From Phallusia mammillata (taxonomy: Eukaryota): 64,000 nucleotides of DNA. Positions 6,128 through 61,067 of this stretch are shown here, piece after piece; the first letter of the stretch is position 1, and the number at the start of each line of letters is the position of its first letter. The notes below the pieces were generated by a model, which saw only the letters and a list, made by a program, of their open reading frames with translations, did not search any database and had not been told where the DNA came from. The translations under genes and the position numbers were made by a program. Location of the stretch: NCBI GenBank assembly GCA_965637545.1, contig OZ281494.1, positions 1,240,001-1,304,000 on the forward strand. Direction: 5' to 3'.

Positions 6128-9100
6128 TCACTTGAAGTTTGAATAAGTGTCGAAATCAGACAGATATTGCATGACAACAGAGTAGCAGTATTTGTAGAGT
6201 TCCTGTAAAAACATAAACATAATTTGAAGACGCAATCTTTATTTCTGAATCTTACGTAAAACATCACCTTGTTGTCGACCATATTCGGTCTCATATCTCT
6301 CAGGTCTTTCACAGTTCGGAATACATCCACCCGCTTTAGAGCCTTTAAACGTTCGAGAATGTTCACCAGAGCGATGAAGGTCCCAGTTCTTGTTGATCCA
6401 TTACTGCGATAAAGAACAAGTCGTGTTAGAAAATTTAGCGAAGGTGGGCTTCAGGTGTACACACGATTTGTGTTTAGGGTTATTGAAAATTATGGCTGAC
6501 ACGAATTAGTGCGATACAGACACAAGGTTTACCTGCAAGCAACCAACACACACTGGCAATTTTGTTTTGCCCTTATTAGTTGCATTTTCTCGATAATTTT
6601 GATAAAATCAATTTCTTTGGGCGGTCGTTCCACGTCACTCCATCCCTTGACTTGCACAAGCATCAATTGCTGGGCAGCCTATACACAAGTTAAGCTACGT
6701 TTTAATCAGCACTGTTTTTAGTGACTTTTTATACAGCCAAACGCCATCATACTCACTTTGTACGATGGCCTAAAAAGAAATGTGATTTGAAAGTTAACAG
6801 TTAAAGTAAAAGTTTAACTTACGAATGCCTTAGTTGCAGACCGGAGGTCGACGGTAATCAGATTGTACAGGTTGCTTTCATTTACATCGCATACGGAAAC
6901 CGAAATAGCTTCGTATTGTAAAGCTGCATTGGTCGGAATCTGATAACAGATGTATTGCATGAAGGCGTGGTTACTGAAAAAAGAAAATGGATTAAAATTG
7001 TCACACTTACTTGAATGCTGTTGTCCAAATCAACGACAAGTGAAGCACTTCTCTCCACGACCATCTTCCAAAAGTTTTCTTCTTCTCCTGGAGCAGGATT
7101 TCTTGCTGCGATGAAGAATTCTGAAGAGCCATGTTCCTGTATATTCAAAGAAATTGCGTTTTTAATAATGATCTGATTTTTCGGAAATAAGCCAAAATCG
7201 TTGTAAGAAGCTTTGATGTTATTTTATAAGTCACCTGAATGTAAGAAGCATCCAATTGCTGGATCATCTCACTTCTATTGTCCCAAACTTTTACCGAAGT
7301 GTTCTTGTCTAAAAACAATATGATTGTATTTAATTTGTATGCTAAACAACAAAAAGCGAAGCATAGTCCGTTAATTTACATATTCTCAGCTGTGGGTGAT
7401 TTTCCTGCCATTCCTCGCCAAATCTCCAAGATGACAATACATTAAATTCTTTCTCCTGAATTTTGTTGCTAAAAAACAATAAAACTTTTGCATTGGGAAA
7501 TCAACTGTCCGTTACAAAAAAGCAGATATCAGATGTACTATAAAATGCAGTCAGCACATTCGTACAAGTACTAAAGCCCAAAGGTTTCTTTGCATATTTT
7601 CTAGCTATTATGTCAAACTGATAGCCAACACTTGCTTATAGGTTGCTAATAGTATAATTGTTTACATTTCACTTGAAGTCATAGATTGAAGTTCAGTCAC
7701 ATCTTTGTCTGTTTTCTTCAAATTCTCACGCTCCATCAGAAGTTTGTAGACGTACTTGTATTGATTCTGTAAACGCGACCTTTATTTCAAAATTTTAATG
7801 AATTTGGATTTAAACTTACAGCATTTTGAATCATGTCTTTTCGGCACTCTCTCATTTTTAGAACAATTTGAGGCACATTAACTGTTCCTCTCTCGTCAAG
7901 TTCATGAAACAGTGTATCCATCGCTATATAAGTACCAGTGCGTCCCACTCCAGCACTACATACAAACATATGCTTCATCTGATTGATCACAATAACACAG
8001 GGTTTGTCAAGTCTTTACCTGCAGTGCACAATGATTGGAGCATTTGTGCTTTGCAAATCATCGACCATGTTACGTAGGTGGATCATGTTGGTTGTAGTTA
8101 ATGGAATCCCATGATCGGGCCAAGTTGTAAACTGCAACTGTGTTATGGTTCGTTTCTCCTGTGTATGTACAATCAACTGCATAACGCTTATCAGGCCACA
8201 TACTAGTGTATCTACAATCAACTGTATCAGGCTCATCAGGCCATATACAAGCAACCAATGCTTAGAATCATAATATCGCCGCAATGGAAACAAACTCAAA
8301 ACCAAACTACATGATACAAACGAGATACTTACAGTGGTCGTAGATATAACAAACTGTCGTTGGACGATTCCACCTATGGTAATTTCTAACTGCGTTCGAA
8401 CTTTCAGATATGAGGACAAGTTGATTTCGGTTTCAACATTAGGCCAGTATTGTTCACATTTAGCCTGCAGGAAAATAAGGATGAATAACGTTAAACGCAA
8501 CTGGACTAGTGACTCATATAATTTACAAGCAAACAAAATACAAGTTTTACAATGCAGGTTCACTGAGCCAAATGATATCAACGTATTACATAATATTCAA
8601 GATCAAACCTAAGCATTTGCAGTAAATTTCACACCACCATGCTGTTAATTACCAAAACTTACCTTTCCGTTTTCCACCAAACCAGTGAGCATTACGATGA
8701 TGTTGGAGTTTTCTTGCCAAACCACCAACCAGAAATCGTTGATTGTCTCCATCTTCGGACCCTGAGTGGCGATAAACTTCCTCTCGTTATCGTAACCCGG
8801 TATATAAGCGGCGTTGATGTAATCGTTTCCACCACTTCCTTGCAAAACCACTCGAGCATGATCGTCTGTTGAACAAACACAAGTAATTAATGCAGAAAGC
8901 CAATTACACGTACAACTGTTTGCATAATTAAATCACCAATTGCAAAAACATTCTTATCACAATGTGCTCTTTATGCACAAGCTCTTCGTCTGTATTGTTT
9001 TTAAGGCAGTGCTAATGAAAGCATTTATCAGTTTTATGAAAACAGGACTTTGTTTGACTACTCCTCTCTATAAGTGTCAAGCAAACAGCATCAGTTTGTC

Positions 9101-12100
9101 TTTTGTAATAAAGTTTATTTGTATTCTTGGTTTACTGCGAGCTTGCAAAAGACAAACATTGCAACATTGTTTCTGCCATACACATTCTAACTACTTTACA
9201 TTTTGTGTCTCAATACTTACAAGGGAAAATGTTCTTGTAGCGGTTTTTCACAGCATTTTGCGGCAACTGTGACACGTCCCTTGTTCTCTGGTTGTTTTTG
9301 CTTTTGTTTTGAATTTCCTGAAATTGATTTGCTTAAAAGTAAAATAGTGCAGAAAAGAAGTGACTGCTTGCACATGTCTGCTTAACTAATGGCATTGCTA
9401 CATAGACTATATGAAACAACTACTTACTGATATGTAACAATGCAGTTGTAATAAGGAGGTTAAAAACGCTGAAGTTTAATAATATTGTAGATGCGATGCT
9501 TATATTCATGAGAAATATAAAATATTTCGCAACCCAGACCCAAATTTGGGTCACGACTCACTATTTGCGGACCCCTGGGTTAGGCTGTGCTTGCAGCATG
9601 TGTGAATTTGAATTATCAATAGTAACTAACTCAATTCATGTATGTGATTAGAATGTAAGTTCCAAAGTCCATTCTAGTTGTTTTTTTGTTGGTGAATTGA
9701 TGATTTTTCAAGTTGTTAAATTATGATTTTTGTGCGCATTAGGATTTTCTTGAAGTGTAATTAGAGATAACGGTTACCAAACCGAAACTACGTCGGAATT
9801 GCATAGGGAAGACATTCCAGTGTGCTGATTAGGAGTTACAACCCAAATGCCAGACCTCGAATTCGCTGGCCAATAGAAATCCGGACTCAGCATTTTTCTT
9901 GAACAGCTCGAACAAGTTTTTGTTTGATCTGCCTTTATGCGCTACGTTTTGATACACACCGTCTGCAACTGAAAGAAAGTTTTTGAATAGACTGATTATA
10001 AATATTTTTAAGTACGCTACAAATAGCTTATTATCTTTACCAACCAAGTAAAACGAGAATACGTGTTGACAAAAATCCGTTTTCGATAATAAGAGAATAA
10101 GTTTTCCGTAAAAGCAAACTAAGTACCAAAAATGTTTCCGCTTTGATCTCCTGTCTAAATTTATACGTACTTACACTGAGTTACACGTTTTGGACTTGTC
10201 AGTTATGTATACTAGTTTCTACGGCCAATGCAAGTTTAATATTGTTCGCTTACAACTTTTCGGAACTTCAAACAAGGTGTGAAAATAAAAAGTTTTAGTT
10301 GCTAGAATGAGAATTTGCCCAGACATATCAGTCATTTAGTTTAATTTAGGTGGGCCAATTAAGTTTATTTTGAGCTATATTCTATCTGAAAAAAAGTCCG
10401 AACTTAAATTTAAGTTTTTTAAATAAGCTTATTGTATTTTGTGCCCTATTTTCAAGCTCTTCGTTAAACATTAGCAATCTTAAATGCAGGCGCAAGTCGC
10501 GTTTAACAAAGGCACCTTGATGTGATTCAACAGTTTGACGATTTGAAACTTCTTCCTGTGAAGGTTGATCTTTGCTGTATCTGTAAATACGTAAAACATA
10601 ACTTCGGGTTAAAGTTTGAATGTATATTAAGATAGATAAGTTAGATTCCAGATAACGTTAGATTATTTTCAATGTAAGCCTCACAACTCGCACTGTTAAA
10701 AATAATTTCGGTTTGAGGCAAACAGAATTAAATTTAGAAATACAATTCAGTCACGTCTGGATTTTAGTTTACAGTTTCTCGGAACTTCTACAATAAGCTA
10801 CAATATAAATCGAAGTTTGAAATCAAACCTGTGTCTTCGACGCACAAACATGACCACCGGCACAACAATAACAAGTACCAAAAGCAACAGCCCGATCACC
10901 AGACCAGCAATCATTGCAACACTTTTTGAATAATCTGCCGTGTTATCTCCAGGAAAACAGCTTGGTGGGGGATCACCCGGAGTTATTACTGTCAGATTGG
11001 ATGTGATGTTTGTGTTGATTGAACCAGTGACAATCACTGTGACCTGCGATATATTAAAAATATATGTTTCGTGTCTTGGTTGCTTGATGTTATGTTCTTA
11101 TGTTTGGTAAAACAGAGAGTGTATTTTGAAAACGCTCAAACGAAAGAGGTTCATTACCTGAATTTTATACCAAGAAGAATGAATGAGATCTTCTATTATT
11201 GTCGAATTGTCAGAATAATAAACAGAGATTGTTTGTTGTGAACCATGGGCTTGAACCACAACCTGCATGTGATTGAGATTTGATATCGATTCAACAAAAA
11301 ACAAACTTTGTTTCAAACCTGTGCCATCAGATCGTTGTTGATGATGAATTGATCAAGTCCAGTCCATCTGACAAGCACAGTTGAAGTGTTGCATGGACAT
11401 GTCTCTGCAGTCGCGTTTACTAAGAAAGTCGTAGATTAGTTGAGACACATGAAGTTTACCAAACATATGACGTTCGCTTACGTGGTGGATAGCAACTCGA
11501 TGGGGGATTTCCATACGTTGTTGCTGGTTTGGACGTTGAGACGGTGGCGTTTATGCGTCCCATAAGCATTGTGGTGATATGTGAATGTTAAGTTCGTTAA
11601 AGTTGTTATTTATAAAGAGCTCCAGTACAAAATTAATAAAGTTGAGATGAAGCAAACCGTTTTTGGCATGTTTTATTTAGGTTTTCATCATTCGGTAATT
11701 AAAATGTTTGATTAGTGCATAAATTCAGTTCAAATGTTAATTACAACGGATTGTCTGTCGTTTATTGTAGTTAATTCGATTTGATTTGTTCAGCGATTAT
11801 TTTACACTACTTACAGTGATGCTATACTTTGTTTCGAAGCTTAGGTTTCCGATGGTTGTGTTTTGATCTACATACGGTGCTAAGATTCTCTTGTTTATTT
11901 CCGGAACATAAATTTCAACCTGAATACAACATTTGTAAAAATACGATTACACACACACAAACATGTTAAAAAAACCTAATGTGATGAATCAATACCTTTG
12001 CACTGAGATTATTGTTCTTGATGAACTGATCAAGTCCAGTCCAACTGACGACCACAGTTGAAGCATTGCATTTGGATTTCTTTACACCAGCCCTGACTAA

Positions 12101-15100
12101 ATGTGGATCAAAAAGTTGAATGCATATGACTACACAGGAATTACACAATGCTGTAATATTTAGAAAAGCGTCACAACAAAGTCATGCACTGCTTCATTGA
12201 AAAACAAGTCAAGGAATCGCAAAATATATAAGAATCATATTCCTAATTTGCACACAATTATGCTGTTTGGATCATTAAGTAAAAAACGAATCAAAAAGTT
12301 GGACATATATTTGAGTTCTTTCTATGGTTTACCTGACCTAAATAATTTTGTTTTATAATTACTCACATTTTGCTTGGCAAGCGTAGTAAGCCGGTTCACC
12401 ACTGCAGTTCATGCTTGACTGCTCCCATCCGATCCCATAATGCAACGCTCCCTGCTGGCAAGTTGTAACGTTGGAAACGGGAAAGTTTGCCGGGGATCCG
12501 TCGCTCCAATACCAACCATTTAATGACGTGTTGTAACGAGCTCCAATTAGAATATTAATATCTGGAGGCAAATTTGCAAATGCTTTAAAAATAAAAATAA
12601 TAAGACAACTTTTGTCTTCGTATGTTTTCAAAACCAAGCACGTGGTGCCAGAAACGATCCATCATATCTGGTAAAATTTTCACACGTCTCCTTGACACTT
12701 CGTAACTTGCTTGAAGTTGGCTGTGTATATCTTCCATAGGTAAATATTTCTTTGTGGCGCCCCAGGGTGTTAATTTCGGAAAACAAGGAATACCGGAATT
12801 GCCATCCTGAAAACAATATACATTTCGTTTCAGGATAACCGTATGTAAAAAACGTTTTTGTTTGACCACAGTAATAAAGATAAAAGAAAGAACGTATTAA
12901 AACGGTATCAATAGCAAGATAGTAACAAAAAGTACAAGTATGTTTAATGGTGAAAACAACGGCCCAAATAGACGTAAAAAGCGACATGCTTTATTGTTCA
13001 AACGTTGCGGCAAATGCTCATGCCATTATCAGTGATGATGTATATGGTGTTCCAAAGTACACGTAAGTTAATCAGAAAAAATAATTTTCATTGAACAGAC
13101 TAAACGGTTTAAATAAAACAGTCTAAACAGCATTTGGTACTTGTGAATAATTTTGTTTTAGTTGTTGTTAGAGACTTTGGAGTCCGCAGTGTGTTTGTTG
13201 CCTTGTGTAATGTTTTCAGTCAATTTAGACATAAATTAGAACAGATGATACAAAATTTTGGCGTCTTTGTGTCAAATTTGAGCATCAACATTTTTGTTGT
13301 GGGCCGTTAGTAATAACAAAGCTGAATGAAACACAAACCTTGGCGTCCACAGTTTCTTCCAATGGTTACATTCCACCTGAAACTCCAATGATTGCAGAAG
13401 TAAATTTCTTGGCTATGAGTTCCATTGCTGCTGGACATTGGTATGTTTAACTATTTGCATTGGTTTGTAGTTAAAATTGCCACCTTTTGTACAAGTCGAA
13501 ATACCACAGATGTCCAAGAGATTTCGTACTGCTCCAACCCGCTTCAGCCGATTTATTTGAGTATTTGTATCGTCTAGGATCGGCGGTATTGTAAAAAATA
13601 TAAACTCTCTCTAAATCTAAAACATATTACGATTACTTGATTTTTCTCTAATCTATTTGCAACAATAATGTACAATGTGTTGATTTAAAGCTAAGTTTAT
13701 GCCTAACTATGGTTACAACATGGTCTGTTGTTGAACTACACACCATATTTAAAATATCGTTATTTTGTATTCACGCAGACCTGACGTGTATTTGTCTGTC
13801 ATGAGTTGAGTGAGAGTTGTGTTGATCTGTGGGTCATCAGTCATTGCAAGATTTCCACCCAGCAAAGAACATTTCTCTTGTGCAGAGTTTGCATCCACAA
13901 GATCGTCAGATAATATTAACACACTGTCCTTCACTGCTTGAAATGTATTTTCGCAACCTAAAAAATGTGTAATCAGTATTGTTATTGTGTTTCGTCGTTG
14001 CGTAATGCTGGATCGGGAAACTTTTTGGCAATTTATGGCTTTTTATACATTATACAGCCCGGTAACGAACACCTTGCGGACCGTTTGCGTTGCCTGGATC
14101 GCGGTGAAAATTGATTTAGTTTTTGAGAATTACTTTTGGAGAACATAATTTAAAACAGGGATCACTCTAAAGTGTGCAATTGAAGGTGTTATAACGAATC
14201 CAGTCGATCCGGGTGGCATTGTATATGAGAAGGCATCAACAAAACAAGTCGCCTTCAATGGGCCTAGCGGACTTTCATTCATGAATGTTTATGCCATAAT
14301 CGCTGGTGTGATAAACGCTTCAGTGCTGTTCTTAGATAGATGATAATTAATCTTAGCTGCCCGCCCAGTGATACCAATTCGACTCGTCTCTATTATTGAA
14401 GCACCGCTAAACATTACAACAATGCTAGGCGTGCTCAGTCAAAATATCTCCAATGTTTTGTCGTACTGCTGATGCTTACAAAGCTGACATGTGCAGCATA
14501 AGTGACAGGCAACTGTGCTTGTGGGTTGACTTTTGACGGCATACAACTAAGCGTGTAGCCGAGTTGGTAGAGGGCGACACCAGAAAGTGCTTTTTGTCGT
14601 GGGTTTGCATTCCACGGCAGTTATTATATTTTTAATGTATTTTCATAAGGTACCTCCGGTAACAAGAACCCTATTGCGATAACTGAAAAACCATTTAAGA
14701 GTTTCAGGCCAAATTTGGCGTAATGGTTACAGAGGTTGATATTAAACATCCGTGTAAACATCAGATTTGGAGGACGTTTGCAAGTTTTGTTTTTGTAGGA
14801 TGACAGTTGAAAAAACGTGGGCTTTATTACATACCTATGCTGTTTATAATGCCCAACATTTTCATGATTGTCTAGAAACCAAAGAAACGCTATAAACTTA
14901 TACAACACTTATACTGTCAACTAAGACATACAACTCTTAATCTGAAGGTACTAAAAACTAGGAATCAACGACTTCTTTACAGTGGATATAAAAAGTTGAA
15001 AACAGACACTTCCAAATTTGGACTGTTCACAATAACAATTACACATAACTTGCAAGTCCAAAACTTTGTAAATCATTGTAAGTAGGTATATATTTTAAAT

Positions 15101-15320
15101 TTACATCAAAGCTGAAGCATTTTTTCTTGTAGATACAAAATATGAGGAGTGGGCCTTACCTTCCGGGCCTATATACCTTCAGGTACCTTATGAGAATGTT
15201 TGCTTTTGTTTAATGTAAAAAGGAAGTGTCTGTTAATTAACACTTACTTTCAGTTTGTCCCTGTAAGCAATAAACCATTAGCGAAATTTCTAAAATTGTG
15301 TTTAACCAATCTCCAGTCAT
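6128..15320 (-). CDS. PTP-2: full-length receptor PTP (signal peptide - split C-type lectin-like domain - 2 FN3-like - TM - D1 - D2)
   Basis: Signal exon 15320-15248 ([24 protein letters not shown]). CTL N-half 13957-13781; insert exons ~13616-12641; CTL C-half ~12561-12368. FN3-like exons ~12097-10950. [32 protein letters not shown] (~9240), [15 protein letters not shown] (~7940-8030), D2 [10 protein letters not shown]. Stop TGA 6130-6128 after FDTYSNFK. Confidence 0.92.
14550..14622 (+). other. Degenerate tRNA-like / SINE head
   Basis: A-box-like TAGCCGAGTTGG and B-box-like GGTTTGCATTCC at tRNA-like spacing; no intact cloverleaf. Confidence 0.35.
14639..15197. mobile_element. MITE in PTP-2 intron 1
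   Basis: Terminal inverted repeats attttcataaggtacct / aggtaccttatgagaat. Confidence 0.6.
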
Positions 15321-46012: not shown

Positions 46013-47000
46013 CAAACTATCTCTTTAGCATGATTACATTCGTGTGTATCGAACTGTCGTTGTCGCCTCAAAAGCCCGTTTTTAGTGTTGGTCAATCTTC
46101 TAACATTGAATTGCCGTTGACAAAAGTTTCAACCGATGTATGATTTTTATTGCTCATTCAGTTTTTTGTGATTTATGTTGTATATTTAGATTTTGTGCTT
46201 GTGCATTAATGTCGTACAAAATCCACGATGTCTTGTCTATTTCGTTGCATTAAGGTAGAACAGCAAACTGTTTGTCAAACCGAAGCAAATTGTTCACAAT
46301 TAATATGTTGATTTAGTAATAATTAGATTTGTCATCGGAACTATGTAAACAATACTGCTCAATTACACTAATAGTTGTTTTAAAACTTTAAAATGGTATT
46401 GTCTCACTGAAAATCAACACCATGAAACAATGAAGCTTAGTTGCTGAGTTGTGTGAGGATGTATTTATGGATCCACAAGCATAAGTGAAACCATCGGAAG
46501 TGTGTTCGATAATTCAATATTTGCGATTTGAAGGTGTCGACCACTCTGTATTTGTAAGTTGCAAGGACGTTAGGTGGCGTAAGAGGGTCATTTGTGACGG
46601 GATGCGTTGACTGCAAATACTTGGCATCAGTCTTTGCCAAAAAATCTCAATCACATTGCTTCTTTCCAACTGATTTAGATGTTAGTCGGGTTTTTCCTTT
46701 TGGTTTTTTGAGGTTGAAGTCTAATCAAGTGTCGTAATTTTCACGTTCGAATTGGTAACTTTCGTCAATTGAGCTCTGAATTTAAGAAATTACGGATCAG
46801 GAAATTACGGATGAATTTAAGAAATTTTCGATCCTGCTTGCAACTTCATACTTTAGTCATCAATTATTGCATATATTTTGTTAACTTCCTCAAGGTTGTT
46901 GACTACGTCAAATCCAATACCTACATTTACCACCCGGAAGTGACAAGGAGACTGGCCTGTATACGTTCAACGCCTCTTACAAACTTTTCCGTTTCATAGG

Positions 47001-47950
47001 ATACAACTTGCCAGCATGGAGCGTTGTATTATGGGATTGGATGGGAGAAGTCAAGCATGGAGTGCAGTGGGGAACCGGCTTGCCATGCTTTTCAAGTGAA
47101 ACGTGAGTATTCTATATACGTGTACTAATATACAAAAGATTCCCTAGTGTAGTGAATTTTAAAAACGCTACCTAAAATCTTTCGTAGCCATTTCTTTCAA
47201 TGCCTCATTGCGCTGTTTTCTTATGGTAAAATTACTGAACGAATGACAATGAAGTGTAGTATAAGTTCGATTTGCAGTTAAAGATGAAAAAGTGTTTGTC
47301 TTATCACAGTATCGAGAACCAGTACTTTTTTTGACGGTACTGTTTTTTGCAGCCCTGTTATTTCTCCAACATTTGGGAAATAAGAATTTAGCAACTACTG
47401 GAGAAATAAAAACATTGAAAAACAAATTGGATTTTTTCCCTAAAATCATGCTGAAACCGACGGAGTTGCAAGTAGGGCCGGGTTCGGGTTCGGGCCTGGT
47501 TCGGAATCGGAAAACAGGCTCAAAACGGACCCGACTTGACGTTCCGTGTCCGCCATTGTTTTTTAAATAAAATCACTTAGCTAAGTAACAATTCTCTGGC
47601 TTTGACCTCATGCCCACCCTCCTCTAAAACGTATCGTTTTACCCATTGTCTACTATTGTTCAATGTGTTCGTTGTCTTTCTCTTTTTTCTTTCTCATCCT
47701 TTGTTGCAAGGCTTTCGTGGGTAGGCCTGTCAATCAAAATTTCGGGCCCAAACGGGCTTTGCAAAAACGTTTCGGGTTCGGGCCGGGCTTCGGGCTTCGG
47801 GCTTATACATTCGGGTTCGGGCCAGTCTTCGGGCTTATACATTCGGGTTCGGGCCGGATTCGGTCTCAGATTTCGGGCCCGCTTGCAACTCTGGACGGAA
47901 CCACTTATGATTACGGAAAAGCTGTACATCGTTGCTACCAACATAACCGC
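47001..47950 (+). pseudogene. Relic of an aGPCR-B-like gene (CTL C-half fragment + start of GAIN exon), interrupted by a MITE
   Basis: 47001-47103 matches the TTCQxGALxYGIGWExSSMxCSGEPA..QVK|gtgagt exon with substitutions. The following intron and 47352-47460 / 47893-47950 align to aGPCR-B ~51030-51455 with frameshifts. No 7TM follows. Mirrored at ~62567-63516. Confidence 0.85.
47461..47892. mobile_element. Foldback MITE with (TTCGGG)-like subterminal repeats (mirror ~62625-63056)
   Basis: Ends gagttgcaag / cttgcaactc; arrays of ttcggg(c); interrupts the GAIN exon of the aGPCR relic. Confidence 0.75.
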
Positions 47951-48443
47951 CTATTGCTTGCTCGGTGTTTTTTTTACGTTAGCCGCTCCTACACGTTATA
48001 GGAATAAAACAAAACAAATGGAGGATGAGATATACAGACAGCTTTGAGTCATGCTTTGCAACGCATTGCTCTTTCTTTCAGACGAAGCTGTTCATTTTTA
48101 CAACATACAGAAAACTCCATCAAAGCTAATCAACAATGTGTTATGAGTCAGTAATCAGTGTCGGTTGTGCAGATGTGCAGTGGGTAGTCGTACCTGTTCT
48201 AGGGTTAAAATCTTGACGCACAGGAAGCAGAAGTAGATCTGTGTAAATGGTTCCCTACTTCATGATTTAAATAACAGCGCCAAGAAAATAAAAAGCGACA
48301 TAGTTTACAGTTCGGCACATGCCATCAGCAGTGTTATGAAGGGATACATCAGGTACACGCGTTTGTATACAGTTGGGTCACATAACAAATGTGCTAAGCA
48401 AGCGTAGCGTAAGACGGTGTGTTGTATATTGCTTTGCATAGCA

Positions 48444-49067
48444 CAGGTGTGGCCAGACCTGCTTCACGCTCGAGCCATATCACATAACTTAGTTTTAGAA
48501 GAGCCGCAACACAAAAAAAATCAAAAAACGAATTCATTTAATCACCACGAAGCATAAGCTATCAAATAATGATTATTGTTGTATGGTGATACTGTGAGTC
48601 TCCACCTGGGCTGCAAGGTGTTTGAAATTTGGCTGATATAATGGAAAAGTTTTTGTGTTTAGCTTCGTAATGACGTTTGAAGTCACTAGTTTTGTAATGA
48701 TTGAACAAAGCTTGACAGATAAGACACACAGGTTTAAACTTTGCAGTTATTGCTAGTAGAAGCTGCAATAGAAATGTAAAGTGCTTTTAATGTCAGCCCT
48801 GACTTACAGCTTAAATCTAAAAATATATTTGACTATAATGCACAAGTTATAGCACACTTTTGTACAAAAATGTTCTTTTCGCCTGGTTTCGGAATGTACA
48901 TTGGTTATGACAAACAGTCAGTCTATTGTTAATACGTGATAAAATGCATTGTTTTATCAACTGGTCAAACAACTGCAAGATGGGAATGCATGTGCAGCAT
49001 CAAAGAGCCGCAATCAAAGGCTCAATGAGCCGCATGCGGCTCGAGAGCCGCAGTTTGGCCACCCCTG
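48444..49067 (-). mobile_element. Internally deleted hAT (Buster/Charlie-like) element with BED-finger remnant (mirror 61450-62073)
   Basis: TIRs caggtgtggcca / tggccacccctg; perfect TSD gcatagca; internal KPVCLICQ...KRHYEAKH zinc-finger remnant. Confidence 0.88.
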
Positions 49068-49449
49068 GCATAGCACATTGCATGGAGATTTTAAATCAAG
49101 TGTTGTGCATTTTAGCTTCCCTGTTGTAAAATAACTTACATTGGTTACAAAGTTTAAGCACAGACAATGTCCAGTTCACTTGTGTTCACTTGGTCCGGAA
49201 GCAAAGCAGTATTGCGAGAAAATGAGGGCGAATCGGTTCAGCTGGTTACAATACATTGACCGTATTGGCTATAGCCAGAATACAGCACACCAAAGCGTCA
49301 GGACAGACTGAAACGTCCACAGCCCACCTGTGAGCTCAAAGTTTATGTTATAATTGCAGCCAGTGAAACACAACGTGTCTTCTACTTCTGCAGCAAATAG
49401 TAATGGCAAGTAGAAAGTGGCCGTATATGTGATCATTGTGACAAACGTG

Positions 49450-52400
49450 ATGACTGGGCTTTCCATCAGCAAGTTTGTGATTTTGTTCCTGATGATTCAC
49501 AATGTATACGGACAAACTAAACGTAAGTGTTACCACTAAAAGTGTTAATATTCGTTTGTTGGGCAATTTAATTTTGCCAATTTTGCAATTAATTGTGCCA
49601 ACTGTCCGAACTCAAGCCTGGTGTTGCGTTTAACAACTTATTAGACAAAACAATTGCAGAAAACAGTGCAACAACGAGGTGTTTTCCAGGTTGCAACAAA
49701 ACGATGCAAGCAGTGAAGGACAGTGTGCTGATATTATCTGACGATCTTGTGGATGCAAACACTGCACAGGAGAAATGTTCTTTGCTGGGTGGAAGTCTTG
49801 CAATGACTGATGACCCACAGATCAACACAACTCTCACTCAACTCATGACAGACAAATACACGAAAGGTTGGCATATTGGTATACAATTTTAAGGCTCGGC
49901 AACAAAGTACAACAAAACGACTTAACTGCCTATCCCAACAAAACGTTGTTTCAGATTTGCAGCGGGTTTATATTTTCTTTGACCCGGACACATATGAACG
50001 ATGCAAATACTCATGTAGTTCGGCTGAAGTGGATTTCTGGAAAAGTACAAAATCTCTCGGACATCTGTGGTATTTCGACTTGTACAAAACGTAAAAAGCA
50101 GATAATTATAAACTTTTCATGATCATTTGGATCAGCGGCTAAAATTTTTCAGTTATGTGTTCATAGCGGCCCGTTTCATCAACTCGAGAATTAGCGGTCT
50201 ATAAAGTTGAATGTTAACCTTAGAAAACAAAAAATTAAAGCAAAATCACTACTATAAGGGTTAAAACCAGATAGTTATAAACTTGTCACTATCAATTAAC
50301 CTAAATTTTTTCGAACAGGAATCTCGAAAACGCGATGGAACCAATTTACTTCTGCGAGGCTTGGAAAGACAGGAATCCTGAAATGGAAAAGTGGTTTGTG
50401 TCTATTGGAAGAAATTGTGACGGACTTTTACCTCATGGAGATTGGGCCGGTTGGTTTTTATTACCTCAGTAAAGTTTGTTGGACCACAAAAATATATTAT
50501 TGCCAAAACATATTATGTACAGTTTATGTTTTGGGTTTGTCAGGTTTTGATACAAAATCTTTTTTATTTAATGTCTTGTATCTCACATACAAATATATGC
50601 GGGATGGAACCTACGATATTCCTTGTTTTTCGACGCTAAATCAAGGAAACGTCAACACGAAATATTCAGCTACAGAAGCATCGGTGAAATGTATGGAAGC
50701 AAACTGCGAAGTGTCAATGAATCGTTTGAAAACTTTACTACATATGATGGATCATTCCTGGCACCAAGTGAGCGTTTGATCTTAAATAGTAATACATCTG
50801 CTCTCATGTCAAAAAGCATTTACCTTCTTTCTAGAAGTTAAAGTGTTTGTTGGAGCTCGTTACAACACGTCGTTGAATGGTTGGTATTGGAGCGATGGAT
50901 CTCCGGCAAACTTTCCTGTTTCCAACGTCACATCTTGCCAGCAGGGAATGTTGCATTATGGGATCGGATGGAAGCAGTCAAGCATGAACTGTAGTGGTGA
51001 ACCGGCTTACTATGCTTGTCAAGTGAAACGTGAGTGTTCTAATATGCATGAACTGAAACACAAAAGATTTCCTGGTGTAAAGAATATTAAAAATGCAGCT
51101 TTCAATCCTTTTTCAAATACTTTTGTCCATACCTAATGTACATCTTTTTCTGATGTGAAATGACTCAACAAGTGACAATGAATTGTAGTATAAGCACGTT
51201 TTGCAGTTAAGGATAAAAAAGTGTTTGTCTTATAAAAGTAACGAGCTAGTCGTTATATATATTTTTTAACGGAGTTGTTTTTTGCAGCCCTGTCATTCCT
51301 CCAACGATTCCGAAATAAGAATTTAGCAAATACTGGAGAAATCAAAAACATTGCAAAACAAATTGGAATATTTTCCCAAAATCATGCTGAAACCAACGGA
51401 ACAACTTATGATTACGGAGAAGCTCAACTGTACATCGTTGTTACCAGCATCAACCAAGAGACATATAACTCGACTATACAGCTGGGATCATCTAAGATTG
51501 ACATCTCATTGCAGACAAACGGGGTTCAACGCATCGTTATTGATGTGTATGTCTTTCAGATAAACACAACCGAAACAGCACAGATTCAACCTCTCAAAGT
51601 CGGCTCCCTGACAACAACAAAGTATGAAGCTGCATTGAACACCACCTTTATTAATATTGTTGGTCGCAATGCAGATAGCTTTGAACCCATATCCAGCAAC
51701 CATTCAACCAGCAACGAGGAAAACAATCATCTTCAAGGAAAAGCAAATTTCACCGTATCTCCAATGTCACTAGAATCCGTCTGCAAGAAAATCAAATTGG
51801 GAAAGATCAGCAATGCAAACCTTATTATCAACAAAATGAAACCAATTTGTCTCTACTTCGACAGAGTTGAAGATAAGTATTCAGATCGTGGTTGCGCCAC
51901 AATTACTGATGACGTAACAGGCAACGTCACTTGCAAATGCCACCATCTCACCTTGTTCACTGTTCTGCTGGCTGTCGAGACCACCACCATACCAAAGGGC
52001 ATCAAGGTAAAGATTCAAATAAGTAATTTAAAGAATGGCTCACTATTAAGAAATATTTTATTTTAGAATGTAAAGTTTAAAGATTCAAATGTCATCTTAA
52101 CAAACAGCACATGATTACGCAATATTTTATTTCAGATCACATCTTACGCCACAGAATCAACATCAGTCGTATTTCTGATTGCCACCATAGTAATCCTATA
52201 CAAATCGAAACAAAACATTGATCGGGTTCCGGTTCAAATCAGCTTGTCAATGGCTCTGCTACTCTTCCACGCAGTCAACCTATCCCATGATCTTGCCGTG
52301 ATGCACGAGATTCCATGCGTGATTCACACAGCAGCCAATCAATATTTATTACTCTGTGCAGGTAAATAACTAACCACATAATTCAACCCTTAAAAGATTT

Positions 52401-53190
52401 GTTTGTGATCGATTGAATCGTTTGTTTCAGGAATGTGGTCTCTGGTCGAAGGAATTCGTCTGTTTATGGCCACTTCCTTTCCAGTCGAGTTTCAAACTCA
52501 GGATTCAACGAAACGTCTCAGGGTTTTTATGCTCACTGGCTGGCTTATTCCCGCTCTATTAGTGGGAATATCTACTACTGTGGGGTTTGTCATGGGAATC
52601 TACATGAAGCCCCAACCGCTAAACGAGCAGTGTAACCAATTGATACAGGTTCAAAAATACGACCGATGCTGGTTGGTGCCCGGTACTCCGATCTTCTACA
52701 CAACGGTCATCGCTCCTCTTGCTCTTGTCCTCTTCATCAACCTGATCATTATCCTGAAGACAACACATGTGATGCTGAACTCGAGACGGATGCGAAACGG
52801 AGGAGAAGATCCGGGGACAGGAGATGCATTAAGAGCATCAAAGTCTTTCATCTTACTCTTCCTCATGCTTGGTGGAACTTGGATTTTTGCTTTTTTCACA
52901 GGTAATAATTGTACATTGTGTGTTTCGAATTACTAACAAATTAATTACATCAATGTAAAGTTACATCAATAAATGTTAAGCACCCTTTCTTTTCTGCAGG
53001 AATTGGCAACGAGATTTCGAACGAGGTGTTCATGTACATCCACAGCTTGGTTAACGGATCGCAGGGTATCGTCGTCTTTCTGTTGTATTGTGTCATTGAT
53101 GATGACGTCAGAAAGGAAGTTTTACCGTGCAAGCGTGAAGCTGATGTTGGGTCTGATTCACAAGTAACAGGACAAACTTTTAGGGGGTGA
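49450..53190 (+). CDS. aGPCR-B: adhesion GPCR (signal - split CTL-like domain - GAIN/GPS - 7TM, no FN3, short tail)
   Basis: Exons ~49450-49522 (MTGLSISKFVILFLMIHNVYGQTK), 49690-49866, 49955-50090, 50319-50449, 50603-50767 (acceptor reads GG), 50835-51029, 51288-52006, 52136-52361, 52431-52901, 53000-53190. GPS CKCHHL/TLFTVLL; WSLVEG; NGSQG. Confidence 0.88.
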
Positions 53191-54189
53191 CTTGCGTGAA
53201 AGTCTTTTTTGTCGATTCGTTCAAACTTGTTGAGTACTTAATACTAAGATCTTCGTCACCTTGATATAAACCTGTCTTCTATAACATTGCATGAAAGCTG
53301 CATTCATGTATTTGGCATTTTTGCTTATCTTTCTTGTACTGTACTGTAATGTGTCAATTGGCAGATGATTTAACTCTAAAATTGAACTTTCGCGTAAATT
53401 TGTGTTTTAGTCGAAAAGAATCTGTGTTTGAAATTGGGATTACACACCTGCTGTGTCAGCAGACATTTAAAACTTTTTGGCGCAAACAGTGTCGATTTAA
53501 ATATGATGTCTAAGATGTGTTAATTCACTTTTTACAGGTAAAACTCCATTATTCTTTCAAGAATACCAAAATTTGTTTAGTGTTATGGACTATTACACTT
53601 CGATTTCTTTTTAAATTCTGCACTCTATTATGTGTTGTGGCTTTTATTGTGCAATGTGATTTAGTAGTAATTTCACTTCAAAGCGATTCCACGTCACTGA
53701 AAAACATACCGAGTTCCTCTCATCCGACTGTCTCTGGGCAGCAGTAGACGTTAAACTCCCGGAAATTTGTCGATAAAAACACATCAACCAACGTCATCGC
53801 CTGCAATACTGTTGTGTCATGGCAGTTCATTCTTGTCACGTCAGATGCACATTTTCCTCTTTGTACTGAGAACCACTGCGGCGATAACATGTTACAGGCG
53901 CGTGATATTGAACGAGTGTGACGTATGTGCAATGAGACTGAGTGATTAATGTTCAAAGGTAAAGAGCATTCATTTTTGGGCGAATTCCTTCATTTAAACA
54001 TTAACTAGTGAAATAGTAATGTACACAACATCTGTAAAAATCGTTACTTTATCAAAGTTAAATCAGCAAAGAAGCATATCAGTATTTTATTTGTATTGCA
54101 TTGCTCACAATGAACACTTCCACTGTATGCGGCCATAGGGTACTTAAACAAATTTGTCGTTCAACTGGTGTAATGCTGAACAAAATACT

Positions 54190-55598
54190 AATTGTTGTTT
54201 TTAAGAACTTGTATTTCGCTAACGTTTCGCCCACCAGAACGGTAGGGCTTCATCAGAGCAATGAACGATATAGTGCAAGCATAACAGGCGAAAATGCACA
54301 AGCGCAGCGGGATATAACGTAAAGTAATTATAAGAGAACAAAGGCTTATCGTGATGGGTTGAGTGTGCTATATTGTGACAGTGCGTAACTAATGCCCGAT
54401 ATTTGAAGAGGAAGTCGAACGCAAAATGTCGCGGAAAACTGGGCTGAGGTTTTTGCCGTCGTTACGGTTTAAAACATTTGAATTAGAATTTATGAGGCAA
54501 CTTTCAAAGACCAATCTTTTCGACCAATTAGGTTCCTGTTTCAAAACTTGGGCATCGTTCCAATTTATGCGGTGATCACATACAAAAACGTGTTCGCATA
54601 AGGCGGACTTGTTAACATCCATGTTTCTGACTGCCACTTTGTGTTCCTTGAGACGTGAATTTAGATTCCGCTTAGTTTGACCAATGTATACCATATCACA
54701 ATCACGGCAAGGGAACTGGTAAACAACTCCTGTACGATGTTGTGGTATAGTGGCATCTTTTGGTTTTGGTAGTAACTGCCCAATAGTTTTAAAAGGTTTC
54801 ATTGCCACTTTTACCCCAGCATCATTCAGGATACGTTTTAGGCGCTCCGATACACCCTGGACATACGGTAAGCATGTGAATGATTTAAACTGTCTGTTTT
54901 GTAAGGTGGTTGTGTTATGGGTCAAGTGGTGTAAGTTACGCGGGAAACCGTTATTCTTTAACACGCGTGCAATATTTTTGCATTCGTGTTTGTGAAGAAC
55001 CGTATCCTTGATGTGAGTTGTGGCTCTGTTGTAAAGCGTTTTGGCGACTGTAAGTTTTTGGTGCCGTGGATGGTGAGACGTGTAGTGTAGGTGGCGGTCA
55101 GTGTTCGTGGGCTTCTTGTATATGCCAGTGATGAGCTTTTGATCTGGCTGCCTGGTAACAGCCACATCTAAAAACGCAATGGTATCGTGTTGTTCGGTTT
55201 CCATGGTGAAAGCTATTGTAGGTGATATGGTGTTCAGGTGTGTGTGAAATGTGTAGACCATGTTTCTGTCGATAATGACGTATGTGTCATCAACGTATCG
55301 AAGCCATAGACGTGGCGGTGTGTGGAAAGTTGCAAGTGCCTTCTGCTCTATGTGTTCCATAGTGAGATTAGCAAGAATAGCTGAAATAGGAGAGCCCATG
55401 GGTGTAACAAAGATTTGTTTGTATATTGTGTCTCTGTAAGTAAAAACTGTTGCGTTAAGGCAATTCTGTAAAGCTGTTTGTATGTGAGAAAGATCTAACC
55501 CGGTGCGTTCGTGTAGTGTAGTGTCGTGTTTGAGTTTGTCCAGAGTGATCGAAAGTGCCAAATCGGTAGGTATGGACGTAAACAAACTGACAACATCA
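54190..55598 (-). mobile_element. Penelope-like retroelement (RT + GIY-YIG endonuclease), 5' end lost in gap
   Basis: DVVSLFTSIP, TPMGSPIS, WLRYVDD, FLDV, YKKPT, then GIY-YIG GVVYQFPCRDCDMVYIGQT. Stop at 54389; the downstream pLTR-like region carries a hammerhead. Confidence 0.93.
54216..54261 (-). ncRNA. Minimal type-I hammerhead ribozyme in Penelope terminal repeat (mirror at 56256-56301, +)
   Basis: UUGCU-CUGAUGA-A-GCCCUACC-guucu-GGUGGGC-GAAA-CGUU-AGCGA: conserved CUGANGA and GAAA core, GC-rich stem II, palindromic ACGU stem III, and UUGCU/AGCGA stem I. Confidence 0.8.
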
Positions 55599-55798: not shown

Positions 55799-56330
55799 CA
55801 GTTCCCTTGCCGTGATTGTGATATGGTATACATTGGTCAAACTAAGCGGAATCTAAATTCACGTCTCAAGGAACACAAAGTGGCAGTCAGAAACATGGAT
55901 GTTAACAAGTCCGCCTTATGCGAACACGTTTTTGTATGTGATCACCGCATAAATTGGAACGATGCCCAAGTTTTGAAACAGGAACCTAATTGGTCGAAAA
56001 GATTGGTCTTTGAAAGTTGCCTCATAAATTCTAATTCAAATGTTTTAAACCGTAACGACGGCAAAAACCTCAGCCCAGTTTTCCGCGACATTTTGCGTTC
56101 GACTTCCTCTTCAAATATCGGGCATTAGTTACGCACTGTCACAATATAGCACACTCAACCCATCACGATAAGCCTTTGTTCTCTTATAATTACTTTACGT
56201 TATATCCCGCTGCGCTTGTGCATTTTCGCCTGTTATGCTTGCACTATATCGTTCATTGCTCTGATGAAGCCCTACCGTTCTGGTGGGCGAAACGTTAGCG
56301 AAATACAAGTTCTTAAAAACAACAATTAGT
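55799..56330 (+). mobile_element. Mirror 3' fragment of the Penelope element (GIY-YIG end + pLTR)
   Basis: Reverse complement of ~54187-54718. Confidence 0.8.
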
Positions 56331-57326
56331 ATTTTGTTCAGCATTACACCAGTTGAACGACAAATTTGTTTAAGTACCCTATGGCCGCATACAGTGGAAG
56401 TGTTCATTGTGAGCAATGCAATACAAATAAAATACTGATATGCTTCTTTGCTGATTTAACTTTGATAAAGTAACGATTTTTACAGATGTTGTGTACATTA
56501 CTATTTCACTAGTTAATGTTTAAATGAAGGAATTCGCCCAAAAATGAATGCTCTTTACCTTTGAACATTAATCACTCAGTCTCATTGCACATACGTCACA
56601 CTCGTTCAATATCACGCGCCTGTAACATGTTATCGCCGCAGTGGTTCTCAGTACAAAGAGGAAAATGTGCATCTGACGTGACAAGAATGAACTGCCATGA
56701 CACAACAGTATTGCAGGCGATGACGTTGGTTGATGTGTTTTTATCGACAAATTTCCGGGAGTTTAACGTCTACTGCTGCCCAGAGACAGTCGGATGAGAG
56801 GAACTCGGTATGTTTTTCAGTGACGTGGAATCGCTTTGAAGTGAAATTACTACTAAATCACATTGCACAATAAAAGCCACAACACATAATAGAGTGCAGA
56901 ATTTAAAAAGAAATCGAAGTGTAATAGTCCATAACACTAAACAAATTTTGGTATTCTTGAAAGAATAATGGAGTTTTACCTGTAAAAAGTGAATTAACAC
57001 ATCTTAGACATCATATTTAAATCGACACTGTTTGCGCCAAAAAGTTTTAAATGTCTGCTGACACAGCAGGTGTGTAATCCCAATTTCAAACACAGATTCT
57101 TTTCGACTAAAACACAAATTTACGCGAAAGTTCAATTTTAGAGTTAAATCATCTGCCAATTGACACATTACAGTACAGTACAAGAAAGATAAGCAAAAAT
57201 GCCAAATACATGAATGCAGCTTTCATGCAATGTTATAGAAGACAGGTTTATATCAAGGTGACGAAGATCTTAGTATTAAGTACTCAACAAGTTTGAACGA
57301 ATCGACAAAAAAGACTTTCACGCAAG

Positions 57327-60300
57327 TCACCCCCTAAAAGTTTGTCCTGTTACTTGTGAATCAGACCCAACATCAGCTTCACGCTTGCACGGTAAAACTT
57401 CCTTTCTGACGTCATCATCAATGACACAATACAACAGAAAGACGACGATACCCTGCGATCCGTTAACCAAGCTGTGGATGTACATGAACACCTCGTTCGA
57501 AATCTCGTTGCCAATTCCTGCAGAAAAGAAAGGGTGCTTAACATTTATTGATGTAACTTTACATTGATGTAATTAATTTGTTAGTAATTCGAAACACACA
57601 ATGTACAATTATTACCTGTGAAAAAAGCAAAAATCCAAGTTCCACCAAGCATGAGGAAGAGTAAGATGAAAGACTTTGATGCTCTTAATGCATCTCCTGT
57701 CCCCGGATCTTCTCCTCCGTTTCGCATCCGTCTCGAGTTCAGCATCACATGTGTTGTCTTCAGGATAATGATCAGGTTGATGAAGAGGACAAGAGCAAGA
57801 GGAGCGATGACCGTTGTGTAGAAGATCGGAGTACCGGGCACCAACCAGCATCGGTCGTATTTTTGAACCTGTATCAATTGGTTACACTGCTCGTTTAGCG
57901 GTTGGGGCTTCATGTAGATTCCCATGACAAACCCCACAGTAGTAGATATTCCCACTAATAGAGCGGGAATAAGCCAGCCAGTGAGCATAAAAACCCTGAG
58001 ACGTTTCGTTGAATCCTGAGTTTGAAACTCGACTGGAAAGGAAGTGGCCATAAACAGACGAATTCCTTCGACCAGAGACCACATTCCTGAAACAAACGAT
58101 TCAATCGATCACAAACAAATCTTTTAAGGGTTGAATTATGTGGTTAGTTATTTACCTGCACAGAGTAATAAATATTGATTGGCTGCTGTGTGAATCACGC
58201 ATGGAATCTCGTGCATCACGGCAAGATCATGGGATAGGTTGACTGCGTGGAAGAGTAGCAGAGCCATTGACAAGCTGATTTGAACCGGAACCCGATCAAT
58301 GTTTTGTTTCGATTTGTATAGGATTACTATGGTGGCAATCAGAAATACGACTGATGTTGATTCTGTGGCGTAAGATGTGATCTGAAATAAAATATTGCGT
58401 AATCATGTGCTGTTTGTTAAGATGACATTTGAATCTTTAAACTTTACATTCTAAAATAAAATATTTCTTAATAGTGAGCCATTCTTTAAATTACTTATTT
58501 GAATCTTTACCTTGATGCCCTTTGGTATGGTGGTGGTCTCGACAGCCAGCAGAACAGTGAACAAGGTGAGATGGTGGCATTTGCAAGTGACGTTGCCTGT
58601 TACGTCATCAGTAATTGTGGCGCAACCACGATCTGAATACTTATCTTCAACTCTGTCGAAGTAGAGACAAATTGGTTTCATTTTGTTGATAATAAGGTTT
58701 GCATTGCTGATCTTTCCCAATTTGATTTTCTTGCAGACGGATTCTAGTGACATTGGAGATACGGTGAAATTTGCTTTTCCTTGAAGATGATTGTTTTCCT
58801 CGTTGCTGGTTGAATGGTTGCTGGATATGGGTTCAAAGCTATCTGCATTGCGACCAACAATATTAATAAAGGTGGTGTTCAATGCAGCTTCATACTTTGT
58901 TGTTGTCAGGGAGCCGACTTTGAGAGGTTGAATCTGTGCTGTTTCGGTTGTGTTTATCTGAAAGACATACACATCAATAACGATGCGTTGAACCCCGTTT
59001 GTCTGCAATGAGATGTCAATCTTAGATGATCCCAGCTGTATAGTCGAGTTATATGTCTCTTGGTTGATGCTGGTAACAACGATGTACAGTTGAGCTTCTC
59101 CGTAATCATAAGTTGTTCCGTTGGTTTCAGCATGATTTTGGGAAAATATTCCAATTTGTTTTGCAATGTTTTTGATTTCTCCAGTATTTGCTAAATTCTT
59201 ATTTCGGAATCGTTGGAGGAATGACAGGGCTGCAAAAAACAACTCCGTTAAAAAATATATATAACGACTAGCTCGTTACTTTTATAAGACAAACACTTTT
59301 TTATCCTTAACTGCAAAACGTGCTTATACTACAATTCATTGTCACTTGTTGAGTCATTTCACATCAGAAAAAGATGTACATTAGGTATGGACAAAAGTAT
59401 TTGAAAAAGGATTGAAAGCTGCATTTTTAATATTCTTTACACCAGGAAATCTTTTGTGTTTCAGTTCATGCATATTAGAACACTCACGTTTCACTTGACA
59501 AGCATAGTAAGCCGGTTCACCACTACAGTTCATGCTTGACTGCTTCCATCCGATCCCATAATGCAACATTCCCTGCTGGCAAGATGTGACGTTGGAAACA
59601 GGAAAGTTTGCCGGAGATCCATCGCTCCAATACCAACCATTCAACGACGTGTTGTAACGAGCTCCAACAAACACTTTAACTTCTAGAAAGAAGGTAAATG
59701 CTTTTTGACATGAGAGCAGATGTATTACTATTTAAGATCAAACGCTCACTTGGTGCCAGGAATGATCCATCATATGTAGTAAAGTTTTCAAACGATTCAT
59801 TGACACTTCGCAGTTTGCTTCCATACATTTCACCGATGCTTCTGTAGCTGAATATTTCGTGTTGACGTTTCCTTGATTTAGCGTCGAAAAACAAGGAATA
59901 TCGTAGGTTCCATCCCGCATATATTTGTATGTGAGATACAAGACATTAAATAAAAAAGATTTTGTATCAAAACCTGACAAACCCAAAACATAAACTGTAC
60001 ATAATATGTTTTGGCAATAATATATTTTTGTGGTCCAACAAACTTTACTGAGGTAATAAAAACCAACCGGCCCAATCTCCATGAGGTAAAAGTCCGTCAC
60101 AATTTCTTCCAATAGACACAAACCACTTTTCCATTTCAGGATTCCTGTCTTTCCAAGCCTCGCAGAAGTAAATTGGTTCCATCGCGTTTTCGAGATTCCT
60201 GTTCGAAAAAATTTAGGTTAATTGATAGTGACAAGTTTATAACTATCTGGTTTTAACCCTTATAGTAGTGATTTTGCTTTAATTTTTTGTTTTCTAAGGT

Positions 60301-61067
60301 TAACATTCAACTTTATAGACCGCTAATTCTCGAGTTGATGAAACGGGCCGCTATGAACACATAACTGAAAAATTTTAGCCGCTGATCCAAATGATCATGA
60401 AAAGTTTATAATTATCTGCTTTTTACGTTTTGTACAAGTCGAAATACCACAGATGTCCGAGAGATTTTGTACTTTTCCAGAAATCCACTTCAGCCGAACT
60501 ACATGAGTATTTGCATCGTTCATATGTGTCCGGGTCAAAGAAAATATAAACCCGCTGCAAATCTGAAACAACGTTTTGTTGGGATAGGCAGTTAAGTCGT
60601 TTTGTTGTACTTTGTTGCCGAGCCTTAAAATTGTATACCAATATGCCAACCTTTCGTGTATTTGTCTGTCATGAGTTGAGTGAGAGTTGTGTTGATCTGT
60701 GGGTCATCAGTCATTGCAAGACTTCCACCCAGCAAAGAACATTTCTCCTGTGCAGTGTTTGCATCCACAAGATCGTCAGATAATATCAGCACACTGTCCT
60801 TCACTGCTTGCATCGTTTTGTTGCAACCTGGAAAACACCTCGTTGTTGCACTGTTTTCTGCAATTGTTTTGTCTAATAAGTTGTTAAACGCAACACCAGG
60901 CTTGAGTTCGGACAGTTGGCACAATTAATTGCAAAATTGGCAAAATTAAATTGCCCAACAAACGAATATTAACACTTTTAGTGGTAACACTTACGTTTAG
61001 TTTGTCCGTATACATTGTGAATCATCAGGAACAAAATCACAAACTTGCTGATGGAAAGCCCAGTCAT
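57327..61067 (-). CDS. Mirror copy of aGPCR-B inside the inverted duplication (possibly artefactual)
   Basis: ORF translations are identical to those of 49450-53190, with coordinates related by x' = 110517 - x. Confidence 0.55.

Follow-up and report, generated by a model that had tools for sequence, protein, structure and literature searches.

A putative C-type lectin-like domain interrupted by three coding exons in a candidate receptor tyrosine phosphatase family of Phallusia mammillata

Gene 1 of the ascidian locus described here probably encodes a type I receptor tyrosine phosphatase whose tip is a compact, non-sugar-binding C-type lectin-like domain (CTLD), interrupted by a 124-residue exon block that forms a nested module (probability roughly 0.6). 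Few recognition domains are as common in animals as CTLDs. To our knowledge, no animal CTLD is interrupted at the turn between helix alpha2 and strand beta2, and a literature search for such an interruption found none. The three-exon block lies in an intron that is still kept by insert-free relatives, so the interruption can be traced to a mechanism, and the family may offer a clear-cut natural case of a domain inserted through the gain of exons.

Exon structure and receptor context

The locus lies in a stretch of 64,000 nucleotides (the window; contig OZ281494.1, positions 1,240,001 to 1,304,000), which has a G+C content of 37% and contains spliced genes. Translation and splice-site reading place all exons of the split CTLD on the minus strand and delimit five of them, A to E, with AG/GT borders. 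Their coordinates, given below, include split-codon bases.

13781-13957, minus strand: exon A, predicted CTLD N-half, with beta1, alpha1 carrying Cys C1, and alpha2
13484-13616, minus strand: exon B, first insert exon, phase 1 in and phase 2 out, with conserved strands ([24 protein letters not shown]) and a variable loop
13339-13412, minus strand: exon C, second insert exon, phase 2 in and phase 1 out, with two conserved Cys around a hypervariable loop
12642-12806, minus strand: exon D, third insert exon, phase 1 in and out, with conserved strands W..RYSLFS, KEIF.Y, KLRSV and GSFLAP and a variable loop
12367-12561, minus strand: exon E, predicted CTLD C-half, with LIGA as the WIGL strand, W.WSDGS, Cys C2, C3 and C4, and a GTGAGT donor at its end

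Every CTLD and insert motif quoted in a first-pass annotation of this DNA was found on the minus strand. That annotation had also described the insert as bounded by phase-1 introns, which is right for the outer A/B and D/E introns but wrong for the internal B/C intron, if this was taken as phase 1, since it is phase 2; the introns before A and between C and D are phase 1 as well. The block of exons B, C, and D measures 372 nt, exactly 124 codons, and the spliced reading of A to E gives 247 stop-free residues. The direct join of A to E, computed for counting, is likewise in frame and stop-free, with 123 residues. Exon E had been thought to end the protein at position 12368; it ends at 12367 at its GTGAGT donor, and the TAA is intronic. 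The gene count in the window also needs correction from four to five, the copies being located at 12.4–14.0, 30.2–31.5, 36.6–38.4, 49.7–51.0, and 59.5–60.8 kb. The last two are exact inverted duplicates, forming a mirror pair around an N gap.

Further exons on the same strand supply the probable remainder of the receptor.

15248-15320, minus strand: probable first coding exon of gene 1, signal peptide, ATG at 15320, phase 1, GTAAGT donor from 15247
10825-12181, minus strand: downstream ectodomain exons with two FN3-like repeats, a stalk and a transmembrane exon, conserved with paralogues (tblastx)
6128-9323, minus strand: cytoplasmic exons with tandem tyrosine-phosphatase domains D1 and D2 (Pfam and motifs)

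The open frame at 15248-15320 starts with MTG, as do the first exons of paralogues, which lie 240–310 nt upstream of exon A, and we infer that it is probably the signal exon, with a weak hydrophobic core. A hydrophobic membrane segment is present at 10947-10825 (minus strand). The FN3 identity is assigned from motifs, as Pfam gave no match on these exon pieces. The phosphatase part is marked by Pfam Y_phosphatase matches on four exon pieces (41–92 bits, all above the cut-off), and a WPD loop and an HC(X5)R motif are visible in its translation. At the donor of exon E (12367), the GT is kept in 56 of 57 copies; moreover, among contigs from runs guessed to be RNA, one stops precisely at 12367 and a second runs from exon E into the following exon near 12070. 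The conserved donor and the second of these contigs thus point to continuity of exon E with the receptor-phosphatase exons, and the split CTLD is predicted to sit at the N-terminal end of a receptor tyrosine phosphatase of type I.

The two CTLD halves and the insertion site

The assignment of exons A and E as the two halves of one CTLD, made in the first-pass annotation, is well supported by sequence comparison within the genome. A PF00059 search of the assembly supplied ordinary CTLD genes, from which eight C-half and four N-half exons were aligned. In hhalign comparisons, the exon E profile matched the eight canonical C-half exons with a probability of 93.2% (E 2.9e-7, 58 columns, beginning at the IGA strand and ending with the last Cys), and the exon A profile matched the four canonical N-half exons with 92.0% (E 6.5e-7, 33 columns). 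The segment LIGA followed by GWYWSDGS aligns with the YIGA/WIGL and W.DG of canonical exons; the W and L of WIGL are substituted, as they also are in this genome's insert-free 'YIGA' genes. Among 42–48 copies plus distant paralogues, C29 of exon A and C34 and C61 of exon E are invariant, and C52 of exon E is present in at least 90% of copies. By sequence position, these residues correspond to the canonical CTLD cysteines, namely C1 in alpha1, C2 in beta3, C3 after beta4, and C4 in beta5.

Searches of outside databases gave weak matches, all of them to CTLD or Link domains and in the right register. Pfam, run exon by exon, returned no match for any single exon A–E of gene 1. Exon A of distant paralogues matched Lectin_C (positions 5–39) and Xlink below threshold, at 13 bits against a cut-off of 22.6. 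Such a score is expected of a half domain, since the N-half exons of genuine CTLD genes themselves score only 14–17 bits on Pfam. The PDB profile matches of exon A were limited to the SP-A CRD (residues 31–76) and CLEC4A4, both weak, and those of exon E were KLRG1, KLRB1, and Dectin-1, each from the WIGL strand onward and also weak. Folded alone, exon E reached a pLDDT of 61; 48 of the top 50 Foldseek hits with this model were CTLDs, but with E values of at least 0.66, and the geometric fold search with the same model gave nothing significant.

Relative to the canonical C-half exons of this genome, exon E carries an 11-residue deletion exactly over the EPN site, and the WND position reads WEQ. 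The reported absence of the EPN/QPD and WND motifs therefore stands, and because these motifs are missing, the domain is predicted to be a CTLD but not a Ca2+-dependent C-type lectin. Its best sequence and Foldseek matches, through exon E, are the compact Ca2+-independent CTLDs of the NK-cell-receptor type (CLEC9A, NKR-P1/KLRB1, KLRG1, LOX-1, and Dectin-1), with which the split CTLD has in common the four canonical cysteines and the lack of EPN and WND.

The site of interruption can be compared directly with insert-free relatives. Many PF00059 matches in the genome begin at model position 36–41, marking a separate C-half exon, and in four of eight fetched ordinary CTLD genes a phase-1 acceptor lies a few residues before YIGA. 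In the four ordinary genes where the N-half exon was located, it lies 220–590 nt upstream of the C-half, and no B- or D-like exon was found between the halves. The A|E boundary coincides with this plain intron in both position and phase, which indicates that the 124 codons occupy what is an intron in related genes. The ordinary two-exon 'YIGA' genes (e.g. G000:C4:25435737-25435967 and C1:3749351-3749593) resemble the split family in having their halves on separate exons around a phase-1 intron, in using [YL]IGA for WIGL, and in the homology of both halves detected by hhalign. Whereas their 220–590 nt intron holds no coding exons, their EPN region is kept and they pass PF00059 at 38–50 bits, the split family has 124 extra codons and no EPN region, and its exons, scanned singly, do not pass PF00059. 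A symmetric 1-1 block of this kind is the hallmark of a module acquired within an already existing intron, and such a gain is the probable history of the insert.

The inserted exons: coding status, spread and composition

The insert is a real, constrained coding module under purifying selection. Among the paralogues in the window, nucleotide similarity is found only in exons, and the introns are unalignable. Exon D has at least 97 genome matches at 44–100% identity, 96 of 97 being stop-free. The order A-B-C-D-E with open frames recurs in nearly all of 50 fetched copies; exon B was not located in one of the 50 (L009), nor exon C, which is short and variable, in two. For exons A, B, D, and E, AG and GT occur at the extrapolated positions in 93–100% of about 54 copies (exon A, AG 51/54 and GT 53/54; exon B, AG 50/53 and GT 53/53; exon D, AG 51/54 and GT 53/54), while the splice positions of exon C cannot be extrapolated across copies because its length varies. 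Across 36 pairs among nine copies, dN/dS was 0.29 for exon B and 0.39 for exon D; dS in the same pairs came to 0.51 for B and D but only 0.20 for A and 0.35 for E. The open frames, conserved splice sites, and dN/dS of 0.3–0.4 uphold the earlier proposal of three coding exons between the CTLD halves. Additionally, the B-C junction is present in short paralogue contigs from runs guessed to be RNA, and none of the A-B, C-D, D-E, or A-E junctions occurs among the contigs of this kind that were listed. The sequencing runs with the best matches (X1 and X2) look like DNA.

Profile searches of the genome gave 129 matches for exon A, 132 for exon B, and 127 for exon E. The insert was also followed into distant clusters. 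Between exons A and E, two genes on contig C8 (L057 and L063) have B-like matches of 27.5 and 16.5 bits and D-like matches of about 31 bits, and a gene at 16.81 Mb of contig C1 (L055) has B- and D-like matches of 60.5 and 28.7 bits. In three further genes of contig C8 (L060–L062) only exon B is clear, exon D scoring 8 bits or not being seen. At 16.3 and 3.49 Mb of C1 the candidate insert exons score just 4–8 bits, yet they stand in the expected order, and at 2.24 Mb (L053) profiles placed no insert exon and candidates were picked by eye. Taken together, the insert appears to be old and present in every family member examined, including the distant clusters, the weakest of which are represented by 4–8-bit or by-eye candidates. 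In the C8 cluster, exon B scores 70–79 bits in two intact copies and 57 bits in a third, cut-off match, as compared with 9–15 bits for exon A and 12–23 bits for exon E. By these profile scores, no other part of the ectodomain is conserved as deeply as exon B, with its [14 protein letters not shown].

The insert has about ten short, conserved, strand-like segments and is rich in aromatic residues, as had been remarked, with 20% F/W/Y against 9% in exons A and E. Alignment and an entropy profile place both of its conserved cysteines in exon C, flanking a hypervariable loop of variable length, and the other variable patches fall in columns 9–16 of exon B and 22–32 of exon D. Exon D folded alone with AlphaFold gave three strands at a pLDDT of 55. 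An internal repeat relating B to D was considered and rejected (hhalign, 1.5%). Pfam searches with the insert exons taken singly gave no match, and the best PDB profile matches, with E values of 3.3 for exon B and 0.018 for exon D, were to unrelated proteins. The exon D profile, searched against 1.84 billion representative proteins, returned one spurious repeat ORF, in a search that reaches close relatives (distant paralogues of the same genome score 4–8 bits). Furthermore, an ESM Atlas feature search with exons D and B gave nothing usable, and a word search with exon A found no database protein of the family. The insert thus seems to be without recognisable relatives at the reach of short single-exon queries, which is that of close kin.

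Candidate architecture, alternatives and significance

In the favoured reading, the three-exon block would have entered a pre-existing intron as a 1-1 module, by exon shuffling or exonisation. The CTLD halves would still come together, tied by beta1/beta5 pairing and by the C1–C4 and C2–C3 disulfides. From the alpha2-beta2 turn the 124 residues would branch off and return to it, forming a module rich in strands in which the two cysteines of exon C make the one internal disulfide. The three variable loops, one per exon and held between conserved strands, would be a likely ligand-contacting surface, and the family as a whole would constitute a repertoire of more than 100 receptors signalling through phosphatase. 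A stronger form of this proposal, in which the insert is a previously unseen all-beta fold nested in the CTLD and the recognition head of an ascidian tyrosine-phosphatase repertoire of more than 100 genes, is put forward tentatively, with the odds against it. The insertion point is probably on the far side of the CTLD from its usual ligand face, and a ligand-presenting role therefore fits less well.

The same exons could be arranged differently in the protein. The 124 residues might pack on the CTLD core as extra strands and loops of one enlarged domain and functionally replace the deleted EPN long loop. The loss of 11 C-half residues at the usual ligand site, the single Cys pair of the whole insert, and the low confidence at which exon D folds alone would all suit such an arrangement, but 124 residues with about ten strand-like segments have the size of a full domain, the symmetric 1-1 block occupies an intron that carries no coding exons in related genes, and conservation of exon B in the C8 cluster far exceeds that of the CTLD halves, as would be expected of a unit with its own core. 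This arrangement consequently appears unlikely. Splicing offers another route, and one that is compatible with a nested module: exons B–D might be an alternatively spliced cassette, included in some isoforms or tissues, with the A-E join as the main or important product and an ordinary compact CTLD of 123 residues as its outcome. The phase-1 outer introns, the 372-nt length, and the stop-free A-to-E join would permit this, the join restores the spacing of the insert-free CTLD genes of the same genome, and the listed contigs guessed to be RNA contain no A-B or D-E junction. The dN/dS values of 0.3–0.4, the conserved splice sites, and the retention of the insert in more than 100 copies and in distant clusters nevertheless imply that it is used, B-C junctions do occur in the contigs guessed to be RNA, and no A-E junction was seen among those listed either, so that the cassette reading is judged quite improbable.

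The most sceptical position would be that B–D are untranslated chance frames, or that A and E are separate half-domains that never reassemble. It could appeal to the fact that no full-length transcript or database protein of the family was found. It is nonetheless close to refuted by the stop-free frames of 96 of 97 exon D matches at 44–100% identity beside unalignable introns, by conserved splice sites and dN/dS below 0.4, and by the halves themselves, each of which matches only the corresponding canonical CTLD half, with C1 and C4 invariant.

For the nested-module reading, several known systems offer partial parallels. Proteins of the C-type-lectin fold with insertions include the variable proteins of diversity-generating retroelements, Mtd and TvpA, and the formylglycine-generating enzyme, in which a core of CTLD type accommodates extra segments and displays variable residues. 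These are bacterial or phage proteins or enzymes with insertions elsewhere in the fold, whereas the split CTLD carries a separate three-exon block in an animal receptor, and no sequence relation to them was found.

As for the domain combination, the parallels are receptor tyrosine phosphatases with FN3 ectodomains. Fugu 'PTP-GMC1' and 'CFN3' are listed among CTLD-containing proteins, with phosphatase or FN3 joined to a CTLD in one predicted protein (PMC514892). The likeness to the ascidian family lies in that combination, and the paper, which offers a bare listing, shows no interrupted CTLD (PMC514892).

The significance of the family lies in an insert seemingly without recognisable relatives that bears the variable loops, on more than 100 predicted receptor phosphatase genes. 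If the insert is an independent fold, it would be a candidate for a new domain family and probably the part that binds ligand in a large, so far unstudied repertoire of chordate receptors. If the nested recognition head proves true, it would represent a new kind of diversified receptor for non-self or partner recognition, built from a new exon block in an old lectin intron.

A search for a contiguous intron-less or read-through copy found none, as not one of the 50 fetched copies spans more than one exon in the right frame. Judging by open-frame lengths, two copies elsewhere in the genome, where reading through would bring in intron-encoded residues, have a D/E intron that is seemingly open and in frame.

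Mirrored receptor phosphatase genes around the assembly gap

The last two of the five receptor tyrosine phosphatase gene copies in the window, at 49.7-51.0 kb and 59.5-60.8 kb, lie on either side of a run of Ns. Positions 46517-54718 and 55799-64000 are inverted copies with 100% identity over 8202 nt, separated by a spacer of 880 nt plus the 200-N gap. This exact duplication makes gene copies four and five mirror images of each other. The inverted pair could be a genuine palindrome or else an artefact of assembly at the gap. Equal scores point to further identical copies near 1.495, 1.685, and 1.695 Mb of the contig. Upstream of the mirrored genes, a fragment of exon E, which encodes the C-terminal half of the C-type lectin-like domain (CTLD), occurs twice:

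46982-47107, orphan exon E fragment (residues 25-66) with an in-frame stop
63410-63535, orphan exon E fragment (residues 25-66) with an in-frame stop

It looks like the relic of an additional gene copy.

Family members and ordinary lectin genes elsewhere in the genome

In copy L009 (contig C4 of this assembly, 22851646-22854804), exons A, C, D, and E are present. Exon B, the first exon of the 124-codon insert, was looked for in this copy and not found, exons A and C being only 135 nt apart (891-1026). Without exon B, the frame would shift from phase 1 into phase 2, and L009 is thus probably a broken gene. The divergent cluster at 3.08-3.13 Mb of contig C8 (L057 and L060-L063) has the same split-CTLD layout. 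Two intact copies there score 70-79 bits for exon B, which is strongly conserved, while the lectin halves have diverged so far that they are barely recognizable and no longer carry the W.WSDGS motif.

Ordinary CTLD genes form large tandem arrays genome-wide, for example at C4:23.4-23.7 Mb, C4:25.3-25.9 Mb, and C3:26.2-26.9 Mb. Their C-half exon begins at position 36-41 of Pfam Lectin_C (PF00059), which points to an intron directly ahead of the WIGL strand as a common feature among lectin genes of this genome.

Exon D and the adjoining intron

Searched against 1.84 billion representative public proteins, the exon D profile had a sole match (E 3.5e-4), a 151-aa protein, P0001. The ORF consists of a four-fold repeat, with a unit similar to the KLRSV..Y..F..Y.GSF end of exon D. 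The match is put down to chance or to a translated repeat rather than to kinship.

The C/D intron of gene 1 (minus strand, 12.4-14.0 kb) contains a short dispersed repeat:

12941-13036, probably a small mobile element

Contigs of every run compared pile up there, including opposite-strand joints, at a depth far above that of the neighbouring sequence.
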